Shown here: positions 10,275 through 43,718 of the stretch, piece by piece
Layout of the letters: every line of letters begins with the position of its first letter
Numbering within the stretch: the first letter of the stretch is position 1
Sequence record: MK308676.1
Direction: 5' to 3' (one strand)
Length of the DNA stretch: 64,000 nt
Notes under the pieces: model-generated
What the model saw: only the letters and a program-made list of their open reading frames with translations
Told to the model about the DNA's origin: nothing
Database searches by the model: none
Position numbers and translations under genes: made by a program

Positions 10275-12096
10275 CGTACCTTCAGCCAGTTCGTTAGACT
10301 GACCCGCAGCATGACCTGCTAAGCTCTAGGGTTTCCCACTAGACGACTCACCTTCGTGAGAAGGGCATTTGACTGCCGTCGAGACTATATCATCGGTTCC
10401 TCTCAAGGACACCGCCTCATGCTTCGCCCGCACTTGCTGGGCTAGCGCTAACTTATTCCGCTATTAGGATAGCATCTGTTAGCATTAGTCGTTGAACCTG
10501 CCACAGTTTAAAGTAGCTCGGCTGCTGATTACCAATTCCATGTTCCCTTAGGAGTGTCATCGCGACAGGTCCATAGGACATCTCTTATGTTCTTTCTGTT
10601 TTCACAGCCTTTCCATCTGAACTTTCGTTCTCTGTTTCGGCCATAAGAGCTTTACGGATTTCCAGCAATTCAAAAGGTTTTACTTCGACTTAGATTTCCA
10701 GCTTCTCAATCTTTTTATGTTAATGTTAAAGCGCCCAAGCAAAGGGACGTTTTTCTTTTCAGCGTTTCTTATTGTAGACTCAGCTATGCCTATTTGCTTA
10801 GCAACTTGCTGTATGGAAGTGCCTACGTAGATTTCTTTAGTTAAGGGGTCCTCTACAGTAACGATGGCCGAAATGCGACTAGCGTCCTTCAGGATAGCGC
10901 CTTCCGCTTCTGTAAAGTCTGGCCATTCAGGTTTGTCCAAAACGGGACGAACCACGTAGCCTCGGCACGGGACATCGTCGAAGGTACTCTTCATCCTGGA
11001 AACATTCGACTCCACTGTCCCTATGTATCTGGCAGCTGCTCCGGAACTTTCAAAGATTTTTACTTCTCCGAAACTTTCCGGGCGATAGCTTTTTACCATA
11101 CAGGACGCGCACATACCAGAGCGACCAACCTGTTTTTCTAGCTCCGACGCCACCGGTACCGGCAATCCGCTGTCTTCATAGGAAAAAGCATATGTGCCCT
11201 TTTCATTTAGCTGATAGACGGCTTCTTCTGCGGCTCTTCTAGAAAGGCGGTCCACGCTATTGAAGTGCATGCCTGTGGCTTTAGCGGCCACCGTAGAGGA
11301 ACTATATATTTCCTGAGTGTTTTCTCTAACGTCAAAAACACAAACTCTTCTACCCTTCCCTTTTCTTGAGATGTTCTTTTCTTTCCCGGCGTTCTTGCTC
11401 TGAGTAAGCCATTGAAGGTTACTGAGCCCATCATTAAAGCCATCAGTATCCTTATGGTCACACTCTAAAACATCCACGTTAGCCGGATAGTCTTTAAAAG
11501 CCAGTAGTTTCGCTCTGCCTCTCCCAAGTAACAGATGTCGCCCCAAGTCGTCTAAAATACTGGCCTTCATATAACGACCATGTATGCTAAATGAATGGGT
11601 CTTTCCGGTTGCTCCATTCAGCAATAGACCTTCTTTAGACAGTCCGTATTTCGTACAGCCTGGAATCCTAAAGTAATTTGGATTTTTTCTAAGCGGCAGG
11701 GGTTTGGTAAACCCATACGTTAGATTACCTGGATGTAGATTATTACGGTCACCGTCTATGAACAATGGGCGTATTTTTCTTACTTCTTCCAGAGAAAAAG
11801 CGAAGAGTTTCTTCCATGCCCAGACCATAACTTTAGCGATGGCCACTTCCACACGGCCATTATCGCTTTTTAAGAATACGCTTTTGTTTCTTCCATTGAC
11901 TTTGCGGACACATTTTGCTTCCGTTCCGTCACTAGAATAAACATTACCCTTTTTGTCTAGCCAGAGACCATAGTTTGGAATCTCGACTCGACTAACATTA
12001 ACATAACCACTTAAACGTTCTCTTTTCATAGCTTATCTCCTCTATGATATCCGTTTTTATGGTTTATTTTGATTTAAAAAACTTACCCTTCTTTTA
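10275..12096 (-). mobile_element. Group I intron (1822 nt) with homing endonuclease
   Basis: Exon ends in U and intron ends in G; P AAUUGCUGGAAA (~10659-10670), Q AAUCAGCAG (~10522-10530), R UUCAACGACUA (~10486-10496), S GAUAUAGUC (~10383-10391); IGS GUCGAAGU 10682-10689. Confidence 0.9.
10680..12029 (-). CDS. Intron-encoded HNH homing endonuclease
   Basis: CDHKDTDGFNDGLSNLQW HNH motif; degenerate upstream copy FIDGDRNNLHPGNL; NUMOD4-like and NUMOD1-like HTH repeats; GAGGAG RBS. Confidence 0.85.
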   Translation of the reverse strand: MKRERLSGYVNVSRVEIPNYGLWLDKKGNVYSSDGTEAKCVRKVNGRNKSVFLKSDNGRVEVAIAKVMVWAWKKLFAFSLEEVRKIRPLFIDGDRNNLHPGNLTYGFTKPLPLRKNPNYFRIPGCTKYGLSKEGLLLNGATGKTHSFSIHGRYMKASILDDLGRHLLLGRGRAKLLAFKDYPANVDVLECDHKDTDGFNDGLSNLQWLTQSKNAGKEKNISRKGKGRRVCVFDVRENTQEIYSSSTVAAKATGMHFNSVDRLSRRAAEEAVYQLNEKGTYAFSYEDSGLPVPVASELEKQVGRSGMCASCMVKSYRPESFGEVKIFESSGAAARYIGTVESNVSRMKSTFDDVPCRGYVVRPVLDKPEWPDFTEAEGAILKDASRISAIVTVEDPLTKEIYVGTSIQQVAKQIGIAESTIRNAEKKNVPLLGRFNINIKRLRSWKSKSK

Positions 12097-14332: not shown

Positions 14333-16237
14333 TTAAGAAGTCACACCGTAACGGTATTGAGAACGACCTGCTTGGTATGCACCTTCACCGTATACACCAC
14401 GTTGTGATGTTGCAGTTTGGAATGCTTGACCAGGCTGGAACGCTTGACCAGCGTTGAAGCCGTGTACGCCTTGAGTGTTGTCGTAGTCAGTGTCAACCAG
14501 ACCTTCAGTGTTTAGAACCATGCCGCTGTTGATAACTGCTTGCATGAACGCTGGAAGGAAATCTGGAGAGTAGAAGAAACGGTCGTAGATACCGTCAATG
14601 TCTGCATTAACTACTTGCTTAAGGATTTCACGACGAGTGTGGATGTTCACAAGACCTTGTGGACCATTACAGCCGCCAGGTACTAGAGACTGCTGGAACT
14701 CACGCATGCGAGTGCCTGCTTCTGCACCGAACAGTTGTAGCATCTGTAGCTGACCACATTCACGTAGGTCGTGAGTGTTACCTTCTTTATCTGTGTAAGT
14801 ACCAGCATGAACAGCAACAGCTTGAGGCTGTAGTACTGGACGTGCTTCGTTACCCCAGATTGGAAGGAAGTGTCCGCCTAGGAATTGGTCTACTAGAGCT
14901 ACGAATTCTGCGTTTGCTTGTAGACGGTCTTGGTCATCACCTAGAACCGATGCAACTAGAAGTTCGTAAATCCATGCAGTACGACCACCACGCAGTACGT
15001 CGAATGCCACAGTGATTGTGTCATGTACGTTACGTGCAATGTACTGGTCAAGTGATACGCGGCCAGTTGTGTCCATACCCATAGATACAGATTTGTCTAG
15101 CTCAATTTCACATGGTGCCCAATCTTCAGCGCCAGTCATACGACCGTCCCACTGATAGTTAAGAACGCCTAGTGAAGGTTTGCCACCAAAGTTACGACGG
15201 AAGACCTGCTTGTAGTTCTGGCCAGACGCTTGCTGTGCAAGTGCTAGTAGGCTGAACAGTACAGTTTCTTCAGACTCGTATGCTTTAGCAGTGTGTGGGT
15301 CAATACCTTGAGCCACTGATTGAACTAGTAGAGGGTGGTACGCACGACGTACGAATTCACCGTTTTCTAGACGCACTGCATCGTTAGATGGAGCGAATAC
15401 GAAATCTACGTAAGTTTCAGCTTGGGCTAGAGTGATACGACGCTCACGGTTGTTACGAGAACGTTTAGCGTTACCGCGACGAGTACGTGCTTCACCAACA
15501 GTTACTGTAGAAGTAATGTCAGTGTAAGTTGGGTTACCTTCTACGTCAGATGTAGTTGAACCTGGGTTCACTTCATGACCGATTTCGATAGTAAGACCAC
15601 GGCTCACGATGTCTGGTGCGCTTACGGTAATGTTGCTGTTTAGAGACATTAGGTTACGTTCAGCTGTTGCGTATAGACAGCCTAGGTAAGCTTCATTCGT
15701 TAGGTCCATTGATGCACGAGCAGTCATGAAGCCGTTTTGAATGTAGTCTACAGTAGCACCGGTACGACGTACAACTTCGTCTGTGATAGCGTTAACAAGA
15801 ACGGCATCCCAGAACTCTGAAGTATCTGCGTCAAGAAGGATTGGTTGGTTTTCAACGATGATTTCTTCGCCTTTAACCGCGCCTTCATATGCACCTTCTT
15901 CGATTAGGATGGTGTAGAAACCTTTAGTCTCACCTACAGTGTTGTAGGCTACGATTGCAGGTACACCTACCTTCATGTCATCGTCGATTGCGATGAACTG
16001 AAGACCTAGTGCGTTGCGAGAAGCTTTCTTCTCAGTAGCAGCACGCTCATTAAGGAACGCTATGCCAGCTGTGATAGCTTCGTTGGTGCGACCAGTGAAG
16101 TCAGAAGCAGAGCCTAGAACTTGGTCTAGGAAGTTGCCGCCCATCGGTGCAGACTGTTGTGCAGCTGCGCCTTGCTCAGGTGCGTTAGTTTCAGTTTGTG
16201 CTTCTTTCTTAGCTTTGTTACCTTTAGGGTCGAACAT
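14333..16237 (-). CDS. chmA: Chimallin, phage nuclear shell protein
   Basis: 634 aa, disordered N/C termini, strong codon bias, canonical position between DNA pol/gp52-like and beta'; ends RYG; early promoter upstream. Confidence 0.8.
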   Translation of the reverse strand: MFDPKGNKAKKEAQTETNAPEQGAAAQQSAPMGGNFLDQVLGSASDFTGRTNEAITAGIAFLNERAATEKKASRNALGLQFIAIDDDMKVGVPAIVAYNTVGETKGFYTILIEEGAYEGAVKGEEIIVENQPILLDADTSEFWDAVLVNAITDEVVRRTGATVDYIQNGFMTARASMDLTNEAYLGCLYATAERNLMSLNSNITVSAPDIVSRGLTIEIGHEVNPGSTTSDVEGNPTYTDITSTVTVGEARTRRGNAKRSRNNRERRITLAQAETYVDFVFAPSNDAVRLENGEFVRRAYHPLLVQSVAQGIDPHTAKAYESEETVLFSLLALAQQASGQNYKQVFRRNFGGKPSLGVLNYQWDGRMTGAEDWAPCEIELDKSVSMGMDTTGRVSLDQYIARNVHDTITVAFDVLRGGRTAWIYELLVASVLGDDQDRLQANAEFVALVDQFLGGHFLPIWGNEARPVLQPQAVAVHAGTYTDKEGNTHDLRECGQLQMLQLFGAEAGTRMREFQQSLVPGGCNGPQGLVNIHTRREILKQVVNADIDGIYDRFFYSPDFLPAFMQAVINSGMVLNTEGLVDTDYDNTQGVHGFNAGQAFQPGQAFQTATSQRGVYGEGAYQAGRSQYRYGVTS

Positions 16238-17693: not shown

Positions 17694-18815
17694 TTAACGC
17701 TTTATGACGGCGACCGGTTCTCTTTGCAATATAGAAGATACGTACTTAACATGTTCTTCTAACGTTGTTCCTTCCGGCATTATTCTGGTCTCCGTATAAC
17801 CGACACCAAAGCTTTCTTTAGAAAGAGTAGGATACGGCATAGAATCTAGAACTAGTTTCTCTTCACTGGGGTCTTTTGTCGACCACACGTATGCTTTGTT
17901 TAGGCCGAGATGGCCCATTCGGCTTTTTAATGAGGATGTAAATCCCAACTTGAATGCACCCGCACCATCGATTGGCATCAGGTAGACGACAGCGATACCT
18001 TCGGCCTTACAGCATTCCGGGATTACCCGCAAATAGAGGTCTCTTCCGCTATAAGTGTTTTCACCATGACACGAACACGTTAACTTGACCGTTCCTTTAT
18101 CTTTAACGAAGCTATAGGTGTGACCAGTAATGGCCGTCGATTGGGTCAGGCGAAACTTAAGGGCAGATTCTGTTATTTCTAGATGCAGTCCCCTATTCGC
18201 GTTACCGCACGTTTGACAACCAGTACCATGGTGGACTAGGTTACTGATTATCGGGTCCCATTCTCTACCGCAGGCCTTACACTTACAATGGATGGTATCC
18301 GTGTTCTTCTTGCCGTCTAGCGAAGAATGCTCGATGCCATCCTCTTTTAGTCTGGCCTTTAGGTCATCGTATTTACCGTCTTGGTAAAAGCGCTTCTCTG
18401 CCATCTTCTTGTAGCCACATTCAGGACAGCCTGTCTTGCGCATAACCGATTCAGCTTGAACCCACCACTCGTGCTTACATGTCTTACAGACGGCCCAACC
18501 GTGCTCCTTGAGACCTTTGTACTCGAACTTACTTAGGTCGATGTTAGGGTCTCGTTTCTTAGTCTCGGTAATGAACTGCTTTTCCGTAATCTTGCGGCTC
18601 TCGTTCTGGTTACGGTACTTACACTCCTTACAGCCTCGTCCCTGCATTAAGTTGCTAGGGCGAATTTCCCATTCGTAGCCACAGCCTTCTACACCGCAGT
18701 AAACTGTAGAGGCTACCTTGTCTCCGAGATACTCGAACTTGTCGAGCATAATAGTGGAGTCCGGATGTCGAGCTCGGAACTTCTCGACAAACTTCTCCGT
18801 TGACATTCTTGCCAT
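17694..18815 (-). CDS. Free-standing putative homing endonuclease (zinc-ribbon repeats plus GIY-YIG-like C-terminal domain)
   Basis: Repeated C..C-HEW-x-GC..C units; VVYLM...FKLGFT...RM; likely start MARMS at 18815. Confidence 0.7.
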   Translation of the reverse strand: MARMSTEKFVEKFRARHPDSTIMLDKFEYLGDKVASTVYCGVEGCGYEWEIRPSNLMQGRGCKECKYRNQNESRKITEKQFITETKKRDPNIDLSKFEYKGLKEHGWAVCKTCKHEWWVQAESVMRKTGCPECGYKKMAEKRFYQDGKYDDLKARLKEDGIEHSSLDGKKNTDTIHCKCKACGREWDPIISNLVHHGTGCQTCGNANRGLHLEITESALKFRLTQSTAITGHTYSFVKDKGTVKLTCSCHGENTYSGRDLYLRVIPECCKAEGIAVVYLMPIDGAGAFKLGFTSSLKSRMGHLGLNKAYVWSTKDPSEEKLVLDSMPYPTLSKESFGVGYTETRIMPEGTTLEEHVKYVSSILQREPVAVIKR

Positions 18816-18843
18816 TGTGTTTTCCTTATAAGGATAAAAGATT

Positions 18844-18900
18844 GTTAGAGACAGACTTTCGCCTGTCTCTAACGGTTGCATGCACAATGGCTATATAGGT
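18844..18900 (-). promoter_or_regulatory. Early-promoter-like ACCTATATAGC followed by a 13-bp GAAA hairpin
   Basis: GUUAGAGACAGGC-GAAA-GUCUGUCUCUAAC. Confidence 0.55.
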
Positions 18901-18911
18901 TTTACTTTAGT

Positions 18912-21080
18912 TTAAATGTCTACGGATAGAGTTGAATCCTCCAACCATCTGTCTGCTTCCTCCTCGGAAATGTCGTCACTGAAGAAATGAGTGAATTTAG
19001 TATTTGCAATGTTCATGTAAATGCCGTTACATGCCAGATAGAAAGGCTGCATTAGAGACATTAGGATTTTGCGCTCATCCATTACGGCGATGATTTCTTT
19101 CGGTATCTTTCCGCCTTGAAGCTGGTCAACCGGAGCCAGTAACTGAGTCATGGCTTTCTTATCGCGACTATACATGAATTCTTTCAATTCACTCGTAACG
19201 TTCCCATCAAGCGATTCCGCCCACTCATTAAAGTCTTTCTCTTTGCCTAACGTCACGTTGACCTTTAATGCGTCCGCTGGAGTTTGTTCAACTCTACCGT
19301 ACTTAGACCCCAAGACGATATTCCATAAGTCTTTACAGACTATCTGAGTTGCTCTGTCTTCAGCGGCGTACGTTTGAGGAGTCTTAATCTGTTCCGTTTT
19401 AAAGTACGTCGCATCACCGTCTCTCAAACGACCAAGAATACGGTGTTCTAATTTGGCCAAATAGGCGGCAGGCTCCATGGGACTAATCCCGCCCTCAATC
19501 GACGGAGCATTAAGAAGATACCAGTAGAACTTTTCTGTTTCTCTTCTCACTGGGCTCGGCAACTTGGAGCTCTTTAACTGCACTCCTTTCACTTCTAGTT
19601 CGGATTCAGGATATACATTCCCTTCACATGCCGATATATCCATGATGTAGTGTTTTGTGACCGTTGTATTAACCTGAGCCTTAGAGTAGAACTCTGACTT
19701 CATAGAAAGTCGGAACAGTTGGTCTTTATGAACGCCCATCTGACCGGACATGAGAGCTAAGGTATGTACGATAAGCTGAGACGTTAGGTATGATGTGATT
19801 GCGCCTGCTTGTACAGCACGGTGAGAGAAATCAATCTTACCAGTAAACCACTTAACCTGACGTTGAGTAGAGAAGATAGATGAGTCGGTATCTGAACCCA
19901 CAACCACACGACGTTTGATTGTAGGTAGAGAATGGATTGACCCTGGCATAATCTTAGTTGAGATGAACGCATCGATAAATACTTGGTACTGGTCGAACGT
20001 TTCCACAACTTGTTTGATGTAGCCAGTCCAGATAGCATACTCGTCTGGAGTTAAGTCCTTCGCTTTCTTACCTGCCATGAAGTCCGCAGATAACAGAGAC
20101 GCTAGTGCCACATCATCGTCTGACGCACCGCCTGCATATTTCTTTTGTTCTTCTGGGTCAGTAAGAGGAGTAGGGCGACGACAAAGGATATCGTACAGTT
20201 GACGAATAGCTTTATCGTTCGTTTCATGAAGTGCGTTTAAATCACCAATGAAACTAAATGCTGCACGCTCAATAGGTGTCATGTTCTCTACCATTCTGTG
20301 AATGAGAGTTTCAGCATGCTCATCTTTCCAATATAGGCGAGATGAACTTAGGATTTGTTCGTAGACATATTCAACCGATGGCGGAGTGATGTCGAACAAC
20401 ATTACGGCTTCTTCTACCTTAACAAGGTCTGCCTGCGACGTCACATAAACCATGTTCTCCATCGTCACCTCTGGGCTGAAGTAATGACGGTTAGAAGCCA
20501 TGAATTTCTCGTTACATGCGTTAGCGTATGAAGTGATAGCACGACATACAGAAGTTAATGACGTGTGAGATGAAGCGTAGTAAAGTGGGTTGTATGGCGA
20601 ACTCAGTGCACCTGAGATAGAGTTGTTACGGATTTTAAAGTTAGCCTGTAACAGGTTACAGAACGTAGCATGTTCATGGTTACCATCCATGAAAGCTGAC
20701 TGGCCTTCTTTCTTAACTGCTTTACGCATCGAAAGGTTATTTGAAATGAAGCCAGATAGGAATGAATCTTCTACGTCTGGGTTACAGTAAGCGATTAAGT
20801 TAGGCGCTAGGATATGGTTCTTAGCAATTACCCAATCTAGGTAAGAAAGTAAATCAACCTTACGCTTAGTACGGTCTCCGCGTGGGGCGCGCATGAGAGA
20901 GTGTAAGTCAGGTGATTTAGGACGCCAATCGGTTAGCATCTTTTCATCGACATAGCCTGTCGTCTTTTCTAGGTCGTCGCCTGTACCTAGGTGAAGTGCC
21001 ATAGACATGGACTTCTTATAATTACCAACGATATCGTAATCACGACCGTAGTAATCTAAATCTTTTACAAAAGCGGACAT
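18912..21080 (-). CDS. Family-B DNA polymerase, polymerase subunit (phiKZ gp50-like)
   Basis: KIRNNSISGA and VGSDTDS motifs, LEVKGVQLKSS; start MSAFV after AGGAG. Confidence 0.85.
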   Translation of the reverse strand: MSAFVKDLDYYGRDYDIVGNYKKSMSMALHLGTGDDLEKTTGYVDEKMLTDWRPKSPDLHSLMRAPRGDRTKRKVDLLSYLDWVIAKNHILAPNLIAYCNPDVEDSFLSGFISNNLSMRKAVKKEGQSAFMDGNHEHATFCNLLQANFKIRNNSISGALSSPYNPLYYASSHTSLTSVCRAITSYANACNEKFMASNRHYFSPEVTMENMVYVTSQADLVKVEEAVMLFDITPPSVEYVYEQILSSSRLYWKDEHAETLIHRMVENMTPIERAAFSFIGDLNALHETNDKAIRQLYDILCRRPTPLTDPEEQKKYAGGASDDDVALASLLSADFMAGKKAKDLTPDEYAIWTGYIKQVVETFDQYQVFIDAFISTKIMPGSIHSLPTIKRRVVVGSDTDSSIFSTQRQVKWFTGKIDFSHRAVQAGAITSYLTSQLIVHTLALMSGQMGVHKDQLFRLSMKSEFYSKAQVNTTVTKHYIMDISACEGNVYPESELEVKGVQLKSSKLPSPVRRETEKFYWYLLNAPSIEGGISPMEPAAYLAKLEHRILGRLRDGDATYFKTEQIKTPQTYAAEDRATQIVCKDLWNIVLGSKYGRVEQTPADALKVNVTLGKEKDFNEWAESLDGNVTSELKEFMYSRDKKAMTQLLAPVDQLQGGKIPKEIIAVMDERKILMSLMQPFYLACNGIYMNIANTKFTHFFSDDISEEEADRWLEDSTLSVDI

Positions 21081-21120: not shown

Positions 21121-21160
21121 AAAAAGAAAAAACACTCCACTGACCCGAAGGCCAGTGGAG
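21121..21160 (-). terminator. Intrinsic terminator upstream of the DNA polymerase gene
   Basis: CUCCACUGGCC-UUCG-GGUCAGUGGAG followed by a U tract. Confidence 0.75.
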
Positions 21161-21290: not shown

Positions 21291-21707
21291 TTAATTACGG
21301 ACGATAGCCATCGATGAGATTTCCCAACCACCTTGGTTAACCCATAGGCGGAACTTATCGTAGTCCCCTTCATCGAAGTTCTTTATCTGTACGTCTAGGC
21401 GGGTGTCACCTAAAGACTCGATAGTGTTATCGATAATCCAAGGCAGGCCAATGTAAACCATACTACCATCAGCTAGAGCCAACTGTACGTAGTCGTACGA
21501 AGCGTAGTCATCTAAGAAACGCGCTTTACGGTCTTCCGAAAGAGTTGGATAGATGTTGATATGGTTTGTATCAGCGTTAGAAGTCTGAGGTACAAACTGG
21601 CCACCGATGATAGCGGCAATCGTTCCTTCAAACTGTTTACGGCCACTGATAGAACCGTAGATAGTAAAGCGGTGTTGGCCGCCAGTTACTAAGTCATTGA
21701 TAGTCAT
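21291..21707 (-). CDS. Conserved small beta-barrel-like phage protein
   Basis: 138 aa, AGGAG RBS. Confidence 0.6.
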   Translation of the reverse strand: MTINDLVTGGQHRFTIYGSISGRKQFEGTIAAIIGGQFVPQTSNADTNHINIYPTLSEDRKARFLDDYASYDYVQLALADGSMVYIGLPWIIDNTIESLGDTRLDVQIKNFDEGDYDKFRLWVNQGGWEISSMAIVRN

Positions 21708-21734: not shown

Positions 21735-22094
21735 CTAGCGGTAAGTCACCGCTAGCTCATACGGACCACCTGCAAACTCAATGTTGCATGGGGCCAAATC
21801 TTTGTTCTGTAATTCGGGAACGGAATCTAAACTTTCGTAGAGCGAAGAATACAGCTCTCTAAAAGATAACAGAACGTCTTTACTTAAATGTCGATTGAAG
21901 ACATCGCACGTATATCCATAAGGCGCTAGATGGGCGAACATCTCTTCTGCTTTCTCATGGTACGCCATTAGGGCTTCGATGTCGTCATCGATTGGAGCAT
22001 CCATAAAGGAAGAGGCTTTAGCAACCTCCATGGCAAACTTATGCACCAGAGGAGTACGCACCATCACCACTACTGCTCGTATAGGACTGAACAT
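21735..22094 (-). CDS. Paralog-array member 9
   Basis: N-terminal VVVMVR strand and C-terminal hairpin. Confidence 0.55.
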   Translation of the reverse strand: MFSPIRAVVVMVRTPLVHKFAMEVAKASSFMDAPIDDDIEALMAYHEKAEEMFAHLAPYGYTCDVFNRHLSKDVLLSFRELYSSLYESLDSVPELQNKDLAPCNIEFAGGPYELAVTYR

Positions 22095-22533
22095 GTTGTT
22101 CCTCCGGTTGCACTAGAATTGAATCAGGGTCTATTACAATTACGCTAAAGTCTGAAAAAGAACAAGCCTCAGTCGAGTTTAGTAGAACGTTGCGTAAGTC
22201 TGAGTTGATGTTAAAAAGACGAACCATAGCTTCTATAAAGCCGCAGGCCATCGCATCTATCTGGATAGAATCCTCGCAGTCTCTACAGCCTGAGATTCTA
22301 CCACCACAATGACAATGGTCTATGAGTAATCCCTCGCAGGTATCTTCATAGAGTTGGTCTTTGATATCGCTAACGTCTGTTATGTCTTGCATCAGACATT
22401 TCAAAATGGGCTTAAGCATAATATCGAACCCGGGAGGGTAGCGATTAACTACCTCCCGAATTCCCGCAGTGCGCATTATTACAAAAGCCGGTTCGTTAAC
22501 GTACTGGACGTTGAACATGGGCGGCACCCTCAT
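22039..22533 (-). CDS. Paralog-array member 8 (Cys cluster)
   Basis: FVIMR ... VIVIDPDSILVQ; CHCGGRISGCRDC. Confidence 0.6.
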   Translation of the reverse strand: MRVPPMFNVQYVNEPAFVIMRTAGIREVVNRYPPGFDIMLKPILKCLMQDITDVSDIKDQLYEDTCEGLLIDHCHCGGRISGCRDCEDSIQIDAMACGFIEAMVRLFNINSDLRNVLLNSTEACSFSDFSVIVIDPDSILVQPEEQHVQSYTSSSGDGAYSSGA

Positions 22534-22861
22534 TGTAAGTAACCAAGAAAATTAAATCGCGAGCAGCAAGCTCTTCCCGATATACTACCTGCCAATCGTT
22601 TCCGTAAGGGAAGCTTTCCGCAATCTCAGATACAATGTTCCAGCGCAATTCATCTAAATGAGTGAGAGACTTACCTGAAGGTAGGAGTATCTCGTTCATC
22701 GTGAACTGGTTACCGTTATGTTTGTATCCAAAGGCTAATGCATTGCGGATTATCTCTTCTCGGTCCGATTCAGCAGAACTATCCATGATGACTTCGCGCA
22801 TTAACTTATCCACGAACTGATGTCCGCGAACAATTACAGTGTGCACAACATTACTCATCAA
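22496..22861 (-). CDS. Paralog-array member 7
   Basis: TVIVR ... EELAARDLIFL. Confidence 0.6.
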   Translation of the reverse strand: MMSNVVHTVIVRGHQFVDKLMREVIMDSSAESDREEIIRNALAFGYKHNGNQFTMNEILLPSGKSLTHLDELRWNIVSEIAESFPYGNDWQVVYREELAARDLIFLVTYNEGAAHVQRPVR

Positions 22862-23247
22862 TCTATCCCCGATACAGTTATCAATAACGTGTGGTCATCC
22901 AGAGAAGTTGCAAAGTAGAAGATACCTGTCATGAGACAGAGCTTATTCTCCACTTCGGTCAACTTCGCTTTCAGCTCAGCCAAATGTCTTTCATCTAATT
23001 CAGACATTAAATACGTTATATCTTCCGAGAACTTCTCGTACTCGTCATCCGTACCATGGAAGGCTTTGAGCACATCATCGAATGCATCGTCAGGGTCCAT
23101 GCCCATAATGCGGTGGCGTACCCACAGGCCAAACGCATGTCTGGCCTCATGGGTGGCCTCAGGCAATATCGTTCCCGCTAGTCTATGTCGGATAAGGATA
23201 TTGTAATCACTCATAATAAAGCACCATACTATCGTTATCGATAACAT
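22858..23247 (-). CDS. Paralog-array member 6
   Basis: NILIR ... TSLDDHTLLIT. Confidence 0.6.
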   Translation of the reverse strand: MLSITIVWCFIMSDYNILIRHRLAGTILPEATHEARHAFGLWVRHRIMGMDPDDAFDDVLKAFHGTDDEYEKFSEDITYLMSELDERHLAELKAKLTEVENKLCLMTGIFYFATSLDDHTLLITVSGID

Positions 23248-23593
23248 CTACTTTAAATTCGCAGTTACCATCCCCAGTAAAACGCTCCGTTAAAAGGCCG
23301 CGTTCCGATTCAGACTTAGGCAGTTGGTTGAAGACCGTGTTTAGAATCTCTTCTTTTATTTCCGTGAAGTACTGCTGCCAACCTTTAGAACCATCGTTAA
23401 AGGCTGGAGCATATTCTTCTAGGTCCGACGAGATTGTTTCACGGTCCACGCCCCACATGTGCATTTCAATTGCTGCCAGAGTCATTTCTCTCAGTTCATC
23501 TTGCGCCGACAAGATATGGGCGTTGGCCTGAGGAAACCGGACTATTACTTTGTCTTGCATTAGGGCCTCCTGATTGGTAACGAGAGAAGACAT
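23207..23593 (-). CDS. Paralog-array member 5
   Basis: KVIVR ... DVIDNDSMVLY. Confidence 0.6.
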   Translation of the reverse strand: MSSLVTNQEALMQDKVIVRFPQANAHILSAQDELREMTLAAIEMHMWGVDRETISSDLEEYAPAFNDGSKGWQQYFTEIKEEILNTVFNQLPKSESERGLLTERFTGDGNCEFKVDVIDNDSMVLYYE

Positions 23594-24086
23594 TAGTTAC
23601 AGGGCGAAGTCTAGGCGTAGGACGAACATCCATGATGCCCTGAGACGTATACGGCATGTTAGCGGCATAAACCACAACGGTTTCGCCATCAATGATAGCT
23701 GTGCCGAAGTGGTCAGTATTCATAACGACATTACACGCTTCAGGGTCATAGCGGAAGCCATCTAGCATATGAACCATCAAGTTTAAGAACTCGTCTTCCA
23801 GAGCTTCATTCTCTTGACAGCCGCCGCAAACGTTCTGCTGATTGTAACAAGTGCATGGTTGTTTTTCCAGACACAATAGTGTGTCCTGCTCAATCATCCA
23901 AAGTTCTAGGTTAGCACAAAGGACGTTATAAGCGTAGTTAAGGTCGATAGTTTGACCAGAAGCTAACGTGGCTTCTTTAAGTTTGGCATAAGCGAGATGA
24001 TAGAACTCTCTGACTGCAAGCGCAGTCAGAGAAGGGTTTGCTCTTGCGAAATCGCTTATCCCAGTATGACGTACTAGGATTTGCAT
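23496..24086 (-). CDS. Paralog-array member 4 (Cys cluster)
   Basis: QILVR ... AIIDGETVVVY; PCTC..VCGGC. Confidence 0.6.
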   Translation of the reverse strand: MQILVRHTGISDFARANPSLTALAVREFYHLAYAKLKEATLASGQTIDLNYAYNVLCANLELWMIEQDTLLCLEKQPCTCYNQQNVCGGCQENEALEDEFLNLMVHMLDGFRYDPEACNVVMNTDHFGTAIIDGETVVVYAANMPYTSQGIMDVRPTPRLRPVTNVFSRYQSGGPNARQSNSPVSSGQRPYLVGAR

Positions 24087-24496
24087 TACAGTATGTCTCC
24101 AAAGTTTAACGCAGGCGCCTCTTCTTGAACTGCCTGCTCTAGTCTATGTAGATAGAACGAGTTCATGTCGATACGCTCGCATTGAAAGTGGTAATACTCT
24201 CGGTCGTGTTCACTAGTGTGCGCATCGACAAGCTGTTGGACTCTTGTTCTTACAGCACCAAATATCGCATTCACGGTATTCGTAGGCACGAAGTTAGTTT
24301 CAAAGTATTCCTGTAAATCGGTCTTTACAAATGCTTGAAACTGAGGTCCCCAAAAGAACCACTGGAATTCACTCCAGGCCATTTCGTTAAAGTCTAAGTG
24401 CGGAGCATAGAACCCATACATCTCGAACTGGTATTCTATCTCAGCGGCGACTTTATCGAAACTAATTAATTCTGGGCTTCGCATTGTATACTCCAT
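24086..24496 (-). CDS. Paralog-array member 3
   Basis: ERIDMNSFYLH. Confidence 0.6.
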   Translation of the reverse strand: MEYTMRSPELISFDKVAAEIEYQFEMYGFYAPHLDFNEMAWSEFQWFFWGPQFQAFVKTDLQEYFETNFVPTNTVNAIFGAVRTRVQQLVDAHTSEHDREYYHFQCERIDMNSFYLHRLEQAVQEEAPALNFGDIL

Positions 24497-24965
24497 CTAC
24501 GAAATGTTCTTGTTCCCATTGCAGGATACGGAAGTCACCAATATAGTCAACGAAGAGTTCTCCAGCTTCAGAGAATCGAGGCGACCAGATATCGAATGAG
24601 TGTGTACCTAATAGCTGCGTGAGTTGATTATGTAAGGTTAGTCCTGAATTTTCCATATAGAAACGACGAAGGTCTTCCATTTGCTTCTTATCGAAAAACC
24701 CGATGGCTTTCATAATGTACGCATCTAAGGGATTGAGTTGTTCTTCGAAAACGAACTCATGGGGTTCGCGACAGAAGTCCAGCATGCTTAGGTTTAGGAC
24801 ATGTCGTGCGTGTGCTTCCACCATACCTCTGAAGAACTCAAAGGAATGCGGCGTATGGAATGGCCAAGGCTGGCTTTCCAGTTTGTTGTATTCAACTACG
24901 TTTACGAGGCGGTACACATATAGGTTACCGTCCAACACATAGCCTTTTAAATGCTCGTCTTGCAT
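24462..24965 (-). CDS. Paralog-array member 2 (conserved jumbo-phage protein)
   Basis: YVYR ... LFVDYIGDFRIL. Confidence 0.6.
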   Translation of the reverse strand: MQDEHLKGYVLDGNLYVYRLVNVVEYNKLESQPWPFHTPHSFEFFRGMVEAHARHVLNLSMLDFCREPHEFVFEEQLNPLDAYIMKAIGFFDKKQMEDLRRFYMENSGLTLHNQLTQLLGTHSFDIWSPRFSEAGELFVDYIGDFRILQWEQEHFVDGVYNAKPRIN

Positions 24966-25327
24966 CTGCGTCGTACTCCTTCCTCGTAGACTATAAAGCT
25001 CAGGTCGTCTATCATTTCTACTTGGAACGTGACTTGCCAGAGGTTTATCGGTTGTAGGGCCTCAGATATCTCATCCATTAAGAAAGGACGCCACTTATCT
25101 AAGAACCGCAATAAGCCTTCTGAGTCAATTGGGTTTACGGGACTGAACTTAGCTCCCCACTTTCGTTGCAATATTAAACCGACTATGGTCTCAACAGTTG
25201 CATCTCTAAGTCTTTTAGTTTCTTCTCGAGGGATTCTCTCAAAAAGAAAAGTCTCGACATCGTAAGCCACCAAACCTAGTTTAGAAACTAAGTCTGGGGC
25301 AAGCTGTCCTATATAACAAATGTCCAT
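24947..25327 (-). CDS. Paralog-array member 1
   Basis: EMIDDLSFIVY. Confidence 0.6.
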   Translation of the reverse strand: MDICYIGQLAPDLVSKLGLVAYDVETFLFERIPREETKRLRDATVETIVGLILQRKWGAKFSPVNPIDSEGLLRFLDKWRPFLMDEISEALQPINLWQVTFQVEMIDDLSFIVYEEGVRRRCKTSI

Positions 25328-25365
25328 AGCTGGAAACCTTTTTATTTATGATGATAACTATGGGA

Positions 25366-25376
25366 GTAATATAGGT
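25366..25376 (-). promoter_or_regulatory. Early promoter ACCTATATTAC heading the paralog array
   Basis: Exact TATATTAC. Confidence 0.65.
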
Positions 25377-25515
25377 ATAAAAATATCTAGAAATCAGGCT
25401 AAATCCAATAGGGTGACGAAGCCTTTATTTATAAGGGTCTTCAAAATCCTATTTTCGCTCAGGCCTTTATTCTATTGGATTCAGGCTGCATGTTAAAGAA
25501 TACAAAGGGACCGCT

Positions 25516-26298
25516 ATGAACAATCTCATTGATTTCTGTATTAAAGGTCATATCCGTAATCGTATTCCGCAAGTGATACTACAGCGTGCCTTTAAACCAG
25601 ACCCTCTGTTCGGACGCCACAATGTTCAGAACCTAGACTGGCTTATTGAGCAAGACGTGCTTATGAACAAGGTTCTACCCGACCTCAATACCATAGGCGG
25701 TGAGCAAATCACCATTGAGTTAACTGAGTTAAATCCTGTCCCTGTTGAAGGGGCATACATCTATGAAATCCCATTGTCTAAGACACAAGGCCGTAATATA
25801 AGCCGAGTGATGTCAGTAGACTATTCCATGGGCCGTCGTGGCGTAACAGACTCACGTGACCCTCTAATGGGAGCTGCTCGTAAGATGTTAATGGCATCTA
25901 CACCTTATGAGTCCACAGGCAATGCTCAGGTTCGTTTAGTCGGACCTAACACTATTGCCGTTCATGAGACTCTATCGGGCGTAGCTCACTTACGTTGTGT
26001 CTTAGGCTATGACGACGAACTCTCCACAGTAGACCAGTCTTACTGGCTAGACTACGCTAACCTGGCTGTCGTAGCAGCAGAGATGATTATCTATAATCGC
26101 ATCTCTATTGAGTTGGGTTCCGGTTCTAGTACAGGTGGTTCTCCGAACGACCGTCTAGTGCAACGTGTAGAAGAAATGTCAGACGCATGGGAACGATATC
26201 AGGAACTGCTTGATTCGACCATGGGTAAACTCTCTGTCCTTTCTAGCTACGATGCGAACTTAGAACACTTGCAGTTACAATTAGGTCCGCTGCCTTAA
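25516..26298 (+). CDS. Conserved core protein (phiKZ gp49-like)
   Basis: 260 aa, sole plus-strand gene here; VRLVGPNTI motif. Confidence 0.55.
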   Translation: MNNLIDFCIKGHIRNRIPQVILQRAFKPDPLFGRHNVQNLDWLIEQDVLMNKVLPDLNTIGGEQITIELTELNPVPVEGAYIYEIPLSKTQGRNISRVMSVDYSMGRRGVTDSRDPLMGAARKMLMASTPYESTGNAQVRLVGPNTIAVHETLSGVAHLRCVLGYDDELSTVDQSYWLDYANLAVVAAEMIIYNRISIELGSGSSTGGSPNDRLVQRVEEMSDAWERYQELLDSTMGKLSVLSSYDANLEHLQLQLGPLP

Positions 26299-26823: not shown

Positions 26824-27192
26824 TTAAGCCTCTACCCCATTATTATAATCTTTACGAGCGTGTGATTTGACAGCTTTAAAAAAGCCTGGGAAAAGCTTAG
26901 GACTATGACCCAACAACTTGGCATTGTCAGTATAGAAGCGAGACGCTCTACGAACATGTTTCGCAGATACTCCCTTGCCCTCTTCTAGTGCGAACTCTCT
27001 AGCCAACTTTGCGCAATAGATGATAGTCTGTACTTTTTCTATCTTTTGTTTCTTTTTCTTAGACTTTACTAATAGCTCCATCTCCGCCTCTCTCTTCTTT
27101 CGACGAAAAGTGACGAAAGCAAAGATGATGCCGAGTATTGTTAGTAGTATGCCTAAAGCCTGGATTATTAATTCCGGCATAGTGCTCCCCAC
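26824..27192 (-). CDS. Single-pass membrane protein with basic cytoplasmic domain
   Basis: ALGILLTILGIIFAFVTF-RRKKR. Confidence 0.65.
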   Translation of the reverse strand: MGSTMPELIIQALGILLTILGIIFAFVTFRRKKREAEMELLVKSKKKKQKIEKVQTIIYCAKLAREFALEEGKGVSAKHVRRASRFYTDNAKLLGHSPKLFPGFFKAVKSHARKDYNNGVEA

Positions 27193-27235: not shown

Positions 27236-27622
27236 TTAAGCTCTAGTTATTTCTAACGCCTTGTCGACGACGTCTTGGAAATCACTCTCTTTTAACAAAT
27301 CTCCTGCAACACTGGAGCAGGCAGTTTTACGATAACGGGTTTTAATCCACCTGATAGGGTCAGGTAGGTTAGGACAGTATACTAATTTCGACTTCAAAAG
27401 AACGACGAGTTTAGCCTTTTCTCTTTTCCGAATACGGTCAATCTGCGCTTGTTCCACGGAGGACTTGGTCAACACGCTTCCAATAGCAAAAAATGCAAAC
27501 ATTGCGAAGGCGAAGGTAAGGCTATGTAGCCACGCTCCGTCTAGCACAAAATTACAATCCGCCATAAGAACTCCTAGGGCAGTGCCCTTCTTTTGGTTAA
27601 ACATACGGAGTGTGAACTCCAT
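27236..27622 (-). CDS. Membrane protein (1-2 TM segments)
   Basis: LTFAFAMFAFFAIGSVL. Confidence 0.6.
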   Translation of the reverse strand: MEFTLRMFNQKKGTALGVLMADCNFVLDGAWLHSLTFAFAMFAFFAIGSVLTKSSVEQAQIDRIRKREKAKLVVLLKSKLVYCPNLPDPIRWIKTRYRKTACSSVAGDLLKESDFQDVVDKALEITRA

Positions 27623-29113: not shown

Positions 29114-29737
29114 TTAGTTTGTTGGTTTGAATTGAGAACCATCGTCAAGATGTTCTTGAAGGATTTCGATATATTCAGCAATTGCCTGGCGCGGATGGTC
29201 TTGCATATAAGAATCCATAATAGGGAGTAAGTCTTCTATCTTAAGACGCATACCTTCACGGTGCGCAATCATAGCGGTCCTACGAGGCTCTATAAAGGCC
29301 TTAGTTGAACCATTTGGCATATGTAGTACAATATTAACTACGGGACCGTTCTTGTTCTTAGCGACCCATAGAGGAAGGTCTTTGCCCTTTCTATTGGCAG
29401 GGAAAAGATTTCTATGTTCTGAACGGAATACTACAAAGTCAGATAGGCCGATTGAGCTTTTGCCGAAACGTAGAGCAGTGTTCATGATAACGGTATCGTG
29501 GCCATCTAGCATATGCTCCTGTGCGACGATATGGCGGCGGAAAGCTTTCAGCGATAGAATGTCATCATCTAACTCCCAACCGTTCTCCTGAGCATCAACA
29601 AGCAGCTTGCGCCACTTGTTGAAGTAAGGACAAGATTTTAGTTTACCGTCTTCTTTAAATGAAGTTGGCCAGTCTGCATCGTTAATGCCGATGCCTGCAA
29701 TAATTTTACTTCGCATGTTTGCCCCACTGAGGTTCAT
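29114..29737 (-). CDS. Degenerate phage HNH-family-like protein
   Basis: IAGIGINDADW...CPYFNKW. Confidence 0.55.
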   Translation of the reverse strand: MNLSGANMRSKIIAGIGINDADWPTSFKEDGKLKSCPYFNKWRKLLVDAQENGWELDDDILSLKAFRRHIVAQEHMLDGHDTVIMNTALRFGKSSIGLSDFVVFRSEHRNLFPANRKGKDLPLWVAKNKNGPVVNIVLHMPNGSTKAFIEPRRTAMIAHREGMRLKIEDLLPIMDSYMQDHPRQAIAEYIEILQEHLDDGSQFKPTN

Positions 29738-30359
29738 AACGTCTGTGGCTATGGATATGTTCTTCTAGATGAATCATGAAACGATGGAAAGCCATCTTAG
29801 CATGCCAATGGTGGTCAGAATAGAAATCGGACAACCACTGCGCATTATTGACTTTCGCTTGAGCGGCTGCTACGTGAGCATCTAAAGCATCCGCCATTAT
29901 CTGGCAGAACTTCTTACGAGGACGCTTGTTCTCTTCGGAAGGCATATATTTGACCTGAGCCTGGTAGCCTCCTGCGACGTAGTGCGATGTCCACAGAGGT
30001 AAGGTGCGGTCGTATCTGATTCTAGGGAAGAAGTTACGATGGTGACGATGTAGTACAACAATATTGTCCAAGGAGACATAGTCGAGATTTAGAATCTCAC
30101 TCATCATTACGATGGTTGTTGGTTGGTCACCGAATGCCTTTTCTTGCTGTTCGACGTGTTTCTTGAAGTTCTCGAACTGCGCGAAGTCAGGACGTACTTC
30201 AACCTTAGCAATCTTAGCACGGCGCAGAATACCTGCCCAAGAGGTGTAATAAGGGCAACGAATCTTCTTAACCTTACCGCCTACGTGTTCAGTCCAGGCT
30301 ACCTGAGTTTCTTTAAAGCGGCGGCCTGCGCCGTAGAGTAATTTAGTTTGCTGCATCAT
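29706..30359 (-). CDS. Degenerate HNH-family-like paralog
   Basis: LLYGAG...CPYYTSWAGILRR. Confidence 0.55.
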   Translation of the reverse strand: MMQQTKLLYGAGRRFKETQVAWTEHVGGKVKKIRCPYYTSWAGILRRAKIAKVEVRPDFAQFENFKKHVEQQEKAFGDQPTTIVMMSEILNLDYVSLDNIVVLHRHHRNFFPRIRYDRTLPLWTSHYVAGGYQAQVKYMPSEENKRPRKKFCQIMADALDAHVAAAQAKVNNAQWLSDFYSDHHWHAKMAFHRFMIHLEEHIHSHRRYEPQWGKHAK

Positions 30360-40310: not shown

Positions 40311-40321
40311 GTAATATAGGT
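40311..40321 (-). promoter_or_regulatory. Early promoter ACCTATATTAC
   Basis: Exact TATATTAC. Confidence 0.65.
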
Positions 40322-43707: not shown

Positions 43708-43718
43708 GTAATATAGGT
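43708..43718 (-). promoter_or_regulatory. Early promoter ACCTATATTAC
   Basis: Exact TATATTAC. Confidence 0.65.

Follow-up and report, generated by a model that had tools for sequence, protein, structure and literature searches.

We examined a window of 64,000 nucleotides (nt) from sequence record MK308676.1, within which nine small genes, here called o1 to o9, follow one another on the minus strand at positions 21735–25327. The sequence here matches Vibrio phage vB_VmeM-Yong XC31/XC32/MS31/MS32 (278–290 kb jumbo phages of Vibrio mediterranei; hereafter Yong) at 100% identity, and we found that, by gene order, the array is the positional counterpart of the gp042.x–gp048 genes of phage phiKZ and the Yong-clade form of a block found family-wide. 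An earlier note, written from the letters of the sequence alone, had put the array forward as an undescribed system. This was not quite the case, as the block is syntenic with phiKZ gp042.x–gp048, which holds the nuclear import factors Imp2 and Imp4; the array is better seen as the Yong clade's version of a fast-evolving early operon shared across the family than as a new system standing alone. Our preferred functional reading, to which we assign a probability of about 40%, is that the nine genes and the adjacent SH3DP gene (the phiKZ gp049 homolog) constitute an early operon whose products are adaptors or accessory proteins associated with the nucleus.

Position and conservation of the nine-gene array

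By its gene content, Yong is a chimallivirus, that is, a chimallin-encoding, nucleus-forming jumbo phage. Its chimallin homolog is a 634-amino-acid (aa) open reading frame (ORF) at 14333–16237, which matched the annotated nuclear shell protein of sm033 at E 3e-35; its match to the Pfam Chimallin model was weak and under the cutoff. The Yong polymerase, which is of the phiKZ type, matched 291 phiKZ-like phage records, and the nearest isolates by this protein (pir03, C-ZP2022, sm033, and BONAISHI) are just 40–44% identical to Yong.

A survey of synteny, which the earlier note had proposed, placed the small-gene block between a gp042-like gene and the SH3DP and polymerase genes in 18 phages or contigs. 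The conserved order is the gp042-like/DUF7484 gene (on the opposite strand), the small genes, SH3DP/gp049, polymerase/gp050, a gp052-like gene, chimallin, and the non-virion RNA polymerase, with 7–11 small genes per phage across the chimalliviruses examined and PhuZ upstream in some. In Yong, the divergent upstream neighbor is the DUF7484 protein gene (25516–26298, plus strand; phiKZ gp042 family, E 1e-74), which forms the upstream boundary of the block in all chimalliviruses examined. Downstream, 27 nt past o9, lies the SH3DP gene (21291–21707, minus strand; 138 aa; PF20287, E 5e-30), followed by the gene for the divergent family-B DNA polymerase (18912–21080, minus strand; phiKZ gp050 homolog, for which PF20286 was matched in the metagenomic relative L020). 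The earlier note had set the array between a gp49-like core gene and the polymerase gene, which needs correcting on both counts: the upstream neighbor belongs to the DUF7484/gp042 family, and the gp049 homolog is the SH3DP gene, located between the array and the polymerase gene.

We recovered all nine of the ORFs listed in the earlier note, on the minus strand and at the same coordinates, and both their conservation and their sequence evolution indicate that they are real genes. With gene starts set by ribosome-binding sites and by independent gene calls on a Logan contig, which refined five of them (o3, 24484; o5, 23560; o6, 23214; o7, 22858; o8, 22518), the array comprises o1 (24947–25327, 126 aa), the first gene; o2 (24462–24965, 167 aa); o3 (24086–24484, 132 aa); o4 (23496–24086, 196 aa); o5 (23207–23560, 117 aa); o6 (22858–23214, 118 aa); o7 (22496–22858, 120 aa); o8 (22039–22518, 159 aa); and o9 (21735–22094, 119 aa), the last before the SH3DP gene. 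All nine proteins, including o1, o3, o6, and o9, are acidic, with isoelectric points (pI) of 4.3–5.5. The ORFs had been described as mostly overlapping, and in fact neighbors overlap at all eight junctions, by 19, 23, 1, 65, 8, 1, 23, and 56 nt from o1 to o9, the first six overlaps being kept in relatives; the nine genes are thus coupled.

The GenBank record (MK308674) annotates eight of the nine genes and carries no coding sequence for o8, which was called as a 159-aa gene in the Logan contig, is conserved, and is under purifying selection. For o5, the GenBank annotation spans 92 aa, and starting instead from an ATG at 23560 preceded by AGGAGG yields 117 aa, in agreement with the independent Logan gene call and with the N-terminal strand regained. 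We also observed a long C-terminal tail of low complexity in o4 and its orthologs (approximately 50 residues, 23496–23650), with a small conserved patch near its end; the final 65 nt of this tail region are shared with the start of o5.

Both a metagenomic relative whose polymerase is 65% identical (contigs L006/L007/L012) and a second one, the Logan contig L020, have nine genes in the same order and of corresponding lengths, and nine genes also occupy the equivalent place in BONAISHI and pVp-JHP1101. Seven of the nine ortholog pairs were clear, at 25–41% identity, among them o1 (38% in L006 and 36% in L020), o3 (30–32%), and o6 (31–32%), while the positional orthologs of o7 (22%, E 4e-4) and o9 (23%, E 0.005–0.01) were weakly similar. 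Orthologs of o5 were also found in pir03 and sm033, and o6 fell in a phmmer cluster with genes of these two phages. The ratio of nonsynonymous to synonymous differences (pN/pS) against a 90%-identical variant contig, which could be tested for five genes (o5–o9), was 0.09 overall (pS 0.34, pN 0.03) and 0.06–0.15 per gene, including 0.07 for o7 and 0.15 for o9. Since every array member has its own ortholog in the relatives, the duplications within the array must be old, and we rejected a lineage-specific burst of recent duplications. Scans of IMG/VR and the Joint Genome Institute (JGI) metagenomes with the polymerase returned one relative lineage only, and in word-indexed protein searches the only matches were clade members that were near-identical or already known.

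The two genes that could be matched to counterparts in the phiKZ clade are the first two. In phmmer clustering, o2 grouped in a cluster of 12 with phiKZ gp043, PhiPA3 gp039, and 201phi2-1 gp75, and jackhmmer recruited 15 members from all clades; by sequence, o2 is the member orthologous to phiKZ gp043, whose family is pan-chimallivirus. It aligns over its whole length to the N-terminal domain of that family and has both the C-terminal hairpin with its invariant D-x-R-I (conserved G-D-x-R-I-x-E-W) and the conserved W-containing helix end. It differs in being a short, core-only form, whereas phiKZ gp043 bears an extra C-terminal half of approximately 190 aa. The gp043 family has no Pfam model and no described function. 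Lengths within it range from approximately 150 to 357 aa (for example, L002 5003–5962, L003 4680–5579, and L011 16342–17415), with the core domain only in the Yong clade and BONAISHI, and with differing C-terminal extensions in pir03/sm033 and in the phiKZ clade.

For o1, the correspondence is one of predicted fold only. In searches of BFVD, the o1 model matched PhiPA3 gp038 (probability 1.0, TM 0.59/0.51), a 141-aa 201phi2-1 protein (gp74 by length; TM 0.59/0.54), and proteins of Goslar, RP12, and PhiEaH1, while profile comparison of o1 with PhiPA3 gp038 was negative. Because PhiPA3 gp038 and the 141-aa protein of 201phi2-1 each come first in their own array, and o2 belongs to the gp043 family, the first two positions are conserved from Vibrio to Pseudomonas phages. 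In phiKZ itself, we noted an unannotated 142-aa ORF between gp042 and gp043 (NC_004629 35899–36327; L011 15900–16328), a homolog of PhiPA3 gp038 (E 2e-8) with strand-and-hairpin ends of the same kind.

Taken as a whole, the Yong array thus resembles phiKZ gp042.x–gp048 (PhiPA3 gp038–gp045; 201phi2-1 gp74–gp80) in its position between the DUF7484/gp042 gene and the SH3DP/gp049 and polymerase genes, in its strand, and in these first two genes. The block of the phiKZ clade likewise consists of 7–9 tightly packed small genes, and N-terminal hydrophobic strands are common there too. The two differ in that Yong o3–o9 have no detectable sequence or profile similarity to gp044–gp048, and in that a predicted zinc-knuckle pair (o4 and o8, described below) occurs in the Yong clade with none seen in the phiKZ clade; import function, moreover, has been demonstrated only for phiKZ and PhiPA3 proteins.

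Relationships and shared layout of the array proteins

The nine ORFs had been described as highly diverged paralogs. We found this to hold for two groups, for which paralogy is proven. The o4/o8 pair scored 84–89% in hhalign, had a Smith-Waterman z of 6.0, and was joined by jackhmmer, which merged both ortholog groups at 1e-15 to 1e-23. The o1/o7 pair displayed 40% identity over 48 aa by BLAST, a z of 9.8, and a jackhmmer value of 3e-19. To the first of these groups o5 can be added, as it aligned to the o8 group over its full length (hhalign 77%) and an ortholog of it was picked up by the o8 jackhmmer search at 2e-4. Links of o6 to the o5 group (hhalign 32%) and of o3 to the o8 group (hhalign 12%) were marginal. 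By hhalign and jackhmmer, o9 showed no profile link to any other member and is tied to the array by the N-terminal motif described below, and o2, the gp043 ortholog, showed no hhalign link to other array members. Across the array, pairwise z-scores exceeded those of background pairs (mean 0.77 vs. 0.0, Mann-Whitney p 0.01). The array would comprise at least three lineages, namely o1/o7, o4/o8/o5 (probably with o6 and o3), and o2 of the gp043 family; these would have arisen from old duplications that predate the clade and would have diverged fast since then, under purifying selection.

The earlier note had described a common layout for the nine proteins, and this description proved accurate. 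Using the other ORFs of the window as background, we found the N-terminal motif ([ILVMF]3-R within the first 25 residues) in six of the nine array proteins (o4–o9) vs. 1 of 37 small background ORFs (Fisher p 6e-5), and the C-terminal motif ([ILVMF]-D-x-x-[ST]-hydrophobic) also in six of nine (o1, o3, o4, o5, o6, and o8) vs. 0 of 68 (p 9e-6), p-values that are optimistic because the regular expressions were chosen post hoc. Both motifs are present in o6, while o3 carries only the C-terminal hairpin motif and o9 only the N-terminal one. The note had set random small phage ORFs as the yardstick for the motifs, and these were enriched both against the background ORFs and against shuffled sequences: in 5000 shuffles, the maxima were four proteins for the N-terminal motif and three for the C-terminal motif, below the observed six. 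Both motifs also recurred in orthologs and in independently retrieved remote relatives.

AlphaFold2 models of two members point to a common topology. The o8 model (predicted local distance difference test [pLDDT] 70.4, predicted template modeling score [pTM] 0.65, nine-sequence alignment) has a strand at residues 13–16, five helices with the Cys loop between them, and strands at 124–130 and 133–138, and the o1 model (pLDDT 70.3, pTM 0.63, six sequences) has a strand at 4–8, three helices, and strands at 100–105 and 110–115. Both begin with a strand, go on to a helical body, and close with a C-terminal hairpin of two strands. The idea of one fold for the array draws support from this shared topology, and is weakened by BFVD hit lists that overlap weakly between the two models. 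Since the two models retrieve largely different BFVD neighbors, a single superfamily of all nine proteins is possible but unproven.

The best BFVD neighbors of the o8 model were a 137-aa entry, probably the o5 ortholog of pir03 (E 6e-4, TM 0.52/0.59), and a 196-aa Yong-block entry taken as o4 (E 6.4e-4), followed by dozens of small uncharacterized proteins, almost all of them chimalliviral. A 118-aa Yong-block entry taken as o6 scored TMt 0.53, while TM values were only approximately 0.2 against the entries taken as o2 and for o1. These identities (Yong o4, o6, and o2, and the pir03 o5 ortholog) were assigned from accession block and length; that of o1 alone was verified, by a self-match at 100% identity, which fixed the Yong accession block. 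Library scans with the nine proteins found nothing significant in Pfam, PHROGs, NCBIfam, or PADLOC, including any known defense or anti-defense family; three family profiles had no sequence match in the Protein Data Bank (PDB), and a fold search of the PDB with the o8 model gave nothing significant (best E 0.9, TM 0.15).

Two of the proteins had been noted to carry Cys clusters. We identified these as a CxC-x6-CxxC motif shared by o4 and o8 and invariant in all of their orthologs (six clade sequences) and in seven further relatives. This arrangement matches the ligand pattern of zinc knuckles and zinc ribbons, and zinc binding by the pair is accordingly predicted. In o4, the motif is combined with the N-terminal strand, the C-terminal hairpin, and the long tail, and o5 is kin of this subfamily without the Cys motif. 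When 1.84 billion representatives were searched exhaustively with HMMER using an o8/o4/o5 profile, only 14 matches were returned, two of them apparently spurious, and all seven of the new small relatives kept the strand, the four Cys residues, and the hairpin. The o4/o8 CxC-x6-CxxC proteins constitute a previously unnamed protein family, for which 1.8 billion representative proteins yielded only about a dozen relatives.

Transcription and possible function of the array

The earlier note had placed the array under one early promoter. Consistent with this, we found an early-promoter-like 11-mer, ACCTATATTAC, at 25366–25376 (minus strand), approximately 39 nt upstream of the o1 ATG, and no copy of it inside the array; this phiKZ-type motif is the sole support for the claim. 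Three further exact copies, all on the minus strand, occur at 328–338, 40311–40321, and 43708–43718, of which the latter two lie 41–46 nt upstream of a minus-strand ORF, and a one-mismatch copy lies 34 nt upstream of another minus-strand ORF. In PMC7058600 (Table 2), the 8-nt core of ACCTATATTAC is listed as a predicted promoter motif of phiKZ. In reviews, AT-rich motifs of this type are assigned to the virion RNA polymerase as its early promoters. The core was modestly enriched in the window (5 found vs. 2.1 expected) and also stands approximately 40 nt before the first array gene in pir03 and sm033. We consider the copies in the Yong window to be candidate early promoters and infer early transcription of the array; the SH3DP gene is likely the tenth gene of the same transcription unit. 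Ahead of their first array gene, phiKZ, PhiPA3, and 201phi2-1 share ATCTATATCATG instead. Scans for sigma-70 promoters were discarded, being at chance level (12 found vs. 13.6 expected). A strong terminator-like hairpin (21135–21160, minus strand; 11-bp stem with 7 G-C pairs and a T run) lies between the SH3DP and polymerase genes.

We propose that the nine genes and the SH3DP gene make up a single early operon in this nucleus-forming jumbo phage, the array products being small and acidic and following a common plan (a beta-strand at the N terminus, then a helical body, then a beta-hairpin at the C terminus). By position, the Yong proteins would most likely act in the manner of Imp2 and Imp4 of phiKZ: each would bind one cargo or partner and deliver it, at the nuclear shell, to the machinery of import or replication, and the o4/o8 pair would use its zinc-stabilized loop for partner binding. 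An import-adaptor role is suggested by the position of the array next to the SH3DP gene and by the phiKZ precedent: Imp2 (phiKZ orf47) and Imp4 (orf48) are needed for nuclear import of particular cargos (Nlp1 and TopA), and Imp2 is itself imported into the phage nucleus (Kokontis et al., bioRxiv 10.1101/2024.03.27.586873). A later preprint terms Imp2 and Imp4 cargo-specific adaptors, and the array proteins would likewise be cargo-specific partners in the Imp1/PicA-centered nuclear import system, as are Imp2, Imp4, and Imp5. Specificity adaptors for nucleus import were among the guesses of the earlier note, and since the array is syntenic with the block containing Imp2 and Imp4, this guess is the one best supported by synteny; homology to Imp2 and Imp4 was tested and not found.

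Several results weigh against this proposal. In jackhmmer searches and hhalign profile comparisons, the Yong proteins showed zero links to Imp2, Imp4, gp045, and gp046, and the Yong group profiles were likewise negative against the gp042.x family. A jackhmmer search from phiKZ gp47 recruited only PhiPA3, 201phi2-1, and Noxifer, with hhalign values of at most 1.2% to the o1–o9 groups, and the best hhalign value of the Imp4 (phiKZ gp48) profile against the Yong groups was 0.6%; since the profile method also misses the o1–gp038 pair seen by fold, all of these negatives, those for gp045, gp046, and gp042.x included, are weak and uninformative. By structure, the o8 model matched the 276-aa 201phi2-1 protein B3FK54 (gp79 by length) weakly (TM 0.27/0.19, probability 0.20), and comparisons with the Imp2 homologs of 201phi2-1 (276 aa) and SL2 (178 aa) gave TM values of 0.19–0.31 at a probability of 0.2. 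The models themselves are of moderate confidence (pLDDT 70) and cover two of the nine proteins, and the BFVD neighbors of the o1 and o8 models are largely different, overlapping only at low confidence. Imp2 and Imp4 are reported to be conserved only in Pseudomonas phages (bioRxiv 10.1101/2024.03.27.586873). Just two genes of the phiKZ array have a known import role and the rest are uncharacterized, so that position alone assigns no function, and a role in replication would account just as well for the linkage of the operon to the SH3DP gene and the polymerase.

Such a replication role is the main rival to the adaptor proposal, and we consider it rather unlikely. Inside the nucleus, the small proteins would, like SH3DP, bind the divergent DNA polymerase or other proteins of replication, which would be why they are co-transcribed with them, and would possibly serve in processivity, primer handling, or assembly, with the zinc-knuckle pair contacting nucleic acid or polymerase. 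The SH3DP gene directly follows the array, shares its strand, and is probably part of its transcript; phiKZ049 (SH3DP) has been described as an SH3-domain polymerase interactor with a strong knock-down phenotype; linkage of the block to the polymerase is family-wide; and Imp2 itself enters the nucleus. Against this, the strong acidity of all nine proteins (pI 4.3–5.5) speaks against direct binding to DNA, searches of Pfam, NCBIfam, PHROGs, and the PDB showed no similarity to any replication protein, the terminator-like hairpin stands between the operon and the polymerase gene, and both characterized members of the phiKZ block act in import. The SH3DP protein, although a neighbor in a likely shared transcript, similarly small (138 aa), and, as phiKZ gp049, a polymerase-associated SH3-fold protein, is of another fold and family, and none of the nine array proteins matches PF20287. 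The adaptor and replication readings both put the array proteins at or in the phage nucleus. We hold it improbable that the genes instead encode host-takeover or counter-defense early proteins, some of them DNA or protein mimics, each neutralizing a host factor from a layout that would serve as a versatile binding scaffold. The very fast divergence of the proteins (22–41% identity vs. 65% for the polymerase), their acidic composition, the early-promoter-like motif, and the lack of a known family would fit such a role, but the orthologs are collinear and one-to-one, with no gain or loss over three clade members and with nine genes also in BONAISHI and pVp-JHP1101, a constancy unlike that of typical accessory anti-defense islands. 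Strong purifying selection, the fixed position of the block in the conserved core region of all chimalliviruses, and the absence of matches to PADLOC-related or anti-defense families also speak against it, as do phiKZ imp2 and imp4, in which a transposon study recovered no disruptive insertions.

At similarly low odds, the nine products could form a single hetero-oligomeric complex, made in fixed ratios through translational coupling and joined by strand or hairpin augmentation. Overlaps at eight of eight junctions, six of them kept in relatives, and the edge-strand elements common to both termini of the proteins would favor such a complex; gene overlaps are, however, common throughout the genomes of Yong and other jumbo phages, and phiKZ Imp2 and Imp4 differ in their cargo-specific genetic roles. 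A complex of this kind can coexist with the adaptor proposal. That the array is a set of unrelated small ORFs with a resemblance due to chance or composition is largely refuted and, in our view, very improbable. Most of the 36 pairs had a Smith-Waterman z below 2 and most hhalign probabilities were below 5%, but the motifs are enriched over background and shuffles, two paralog pairs are strong, the o1 and o8 models have the same topology, and the motifs are kept in the orthologs and in 12 remote relatives drawn from 1.8 billion representatives.

A broader form of the adaptor proposal, which we regard as doubtful, is that all of the small pre-polymerase genes of every chimallivirus, those for Imp2 and Imp4 among them, make up a single superfamily, ancient and fast-evolving, of strand-helices-hairpin proteins that act as cargo-specific PicA/Imp1 licensing adaptors. 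If so, each nucleus-forming phage would have a panel of approximately 7–11 adaptors defining which proteins enter its nucleus, and the panel of Yong would number nine, including the zinc-knuckle pair. The known adaptors Imp2, Imp4, and Imp5 are reported to be restricted to Pseudomonas phages, while the block itself is universal in the family and consists of small acidic proteins of one general architecture. Were the remaining members adaptors too, the block would be a family-wide module of cargo specificity and would provide a list of candidates in any chimallivirus.

Other features of the window

No PhuZ was detectable anywhere within the 64-kb window. In the closest relatives and in BONAISHI, the gap between the first gene of the array and the DUF7484 gene holds a PhuZ-like tubulin gene (L006 4592–5593; L020 5734–6738; L004 3550–4539), while it is absent from this gap in Yong (25328–25515), pir03, sm033, and C-ZP2022. 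Between the polymerase gene and the gp052-like gene of Yong, we found a 397-aa ORF with a treble-clef zinc-finger domain (DUF4379; 17694–18887, minus strand), and beyond it, in the same core region, an HNH/NUMOD1 ORF (10680–12029, minus strand); both are possible homing-endonuclease insertions. Paralogy within the window also extends past the array, as the overlapping adjacent ORFs at 29114–29737 and 29706–30359 (both minus strand) are clear paralogs (Smith-Waterman z 33), and the ORFs at 26824–27192 and 27236–27622 form a weaker pair (Smith-Waterman z 5.3).

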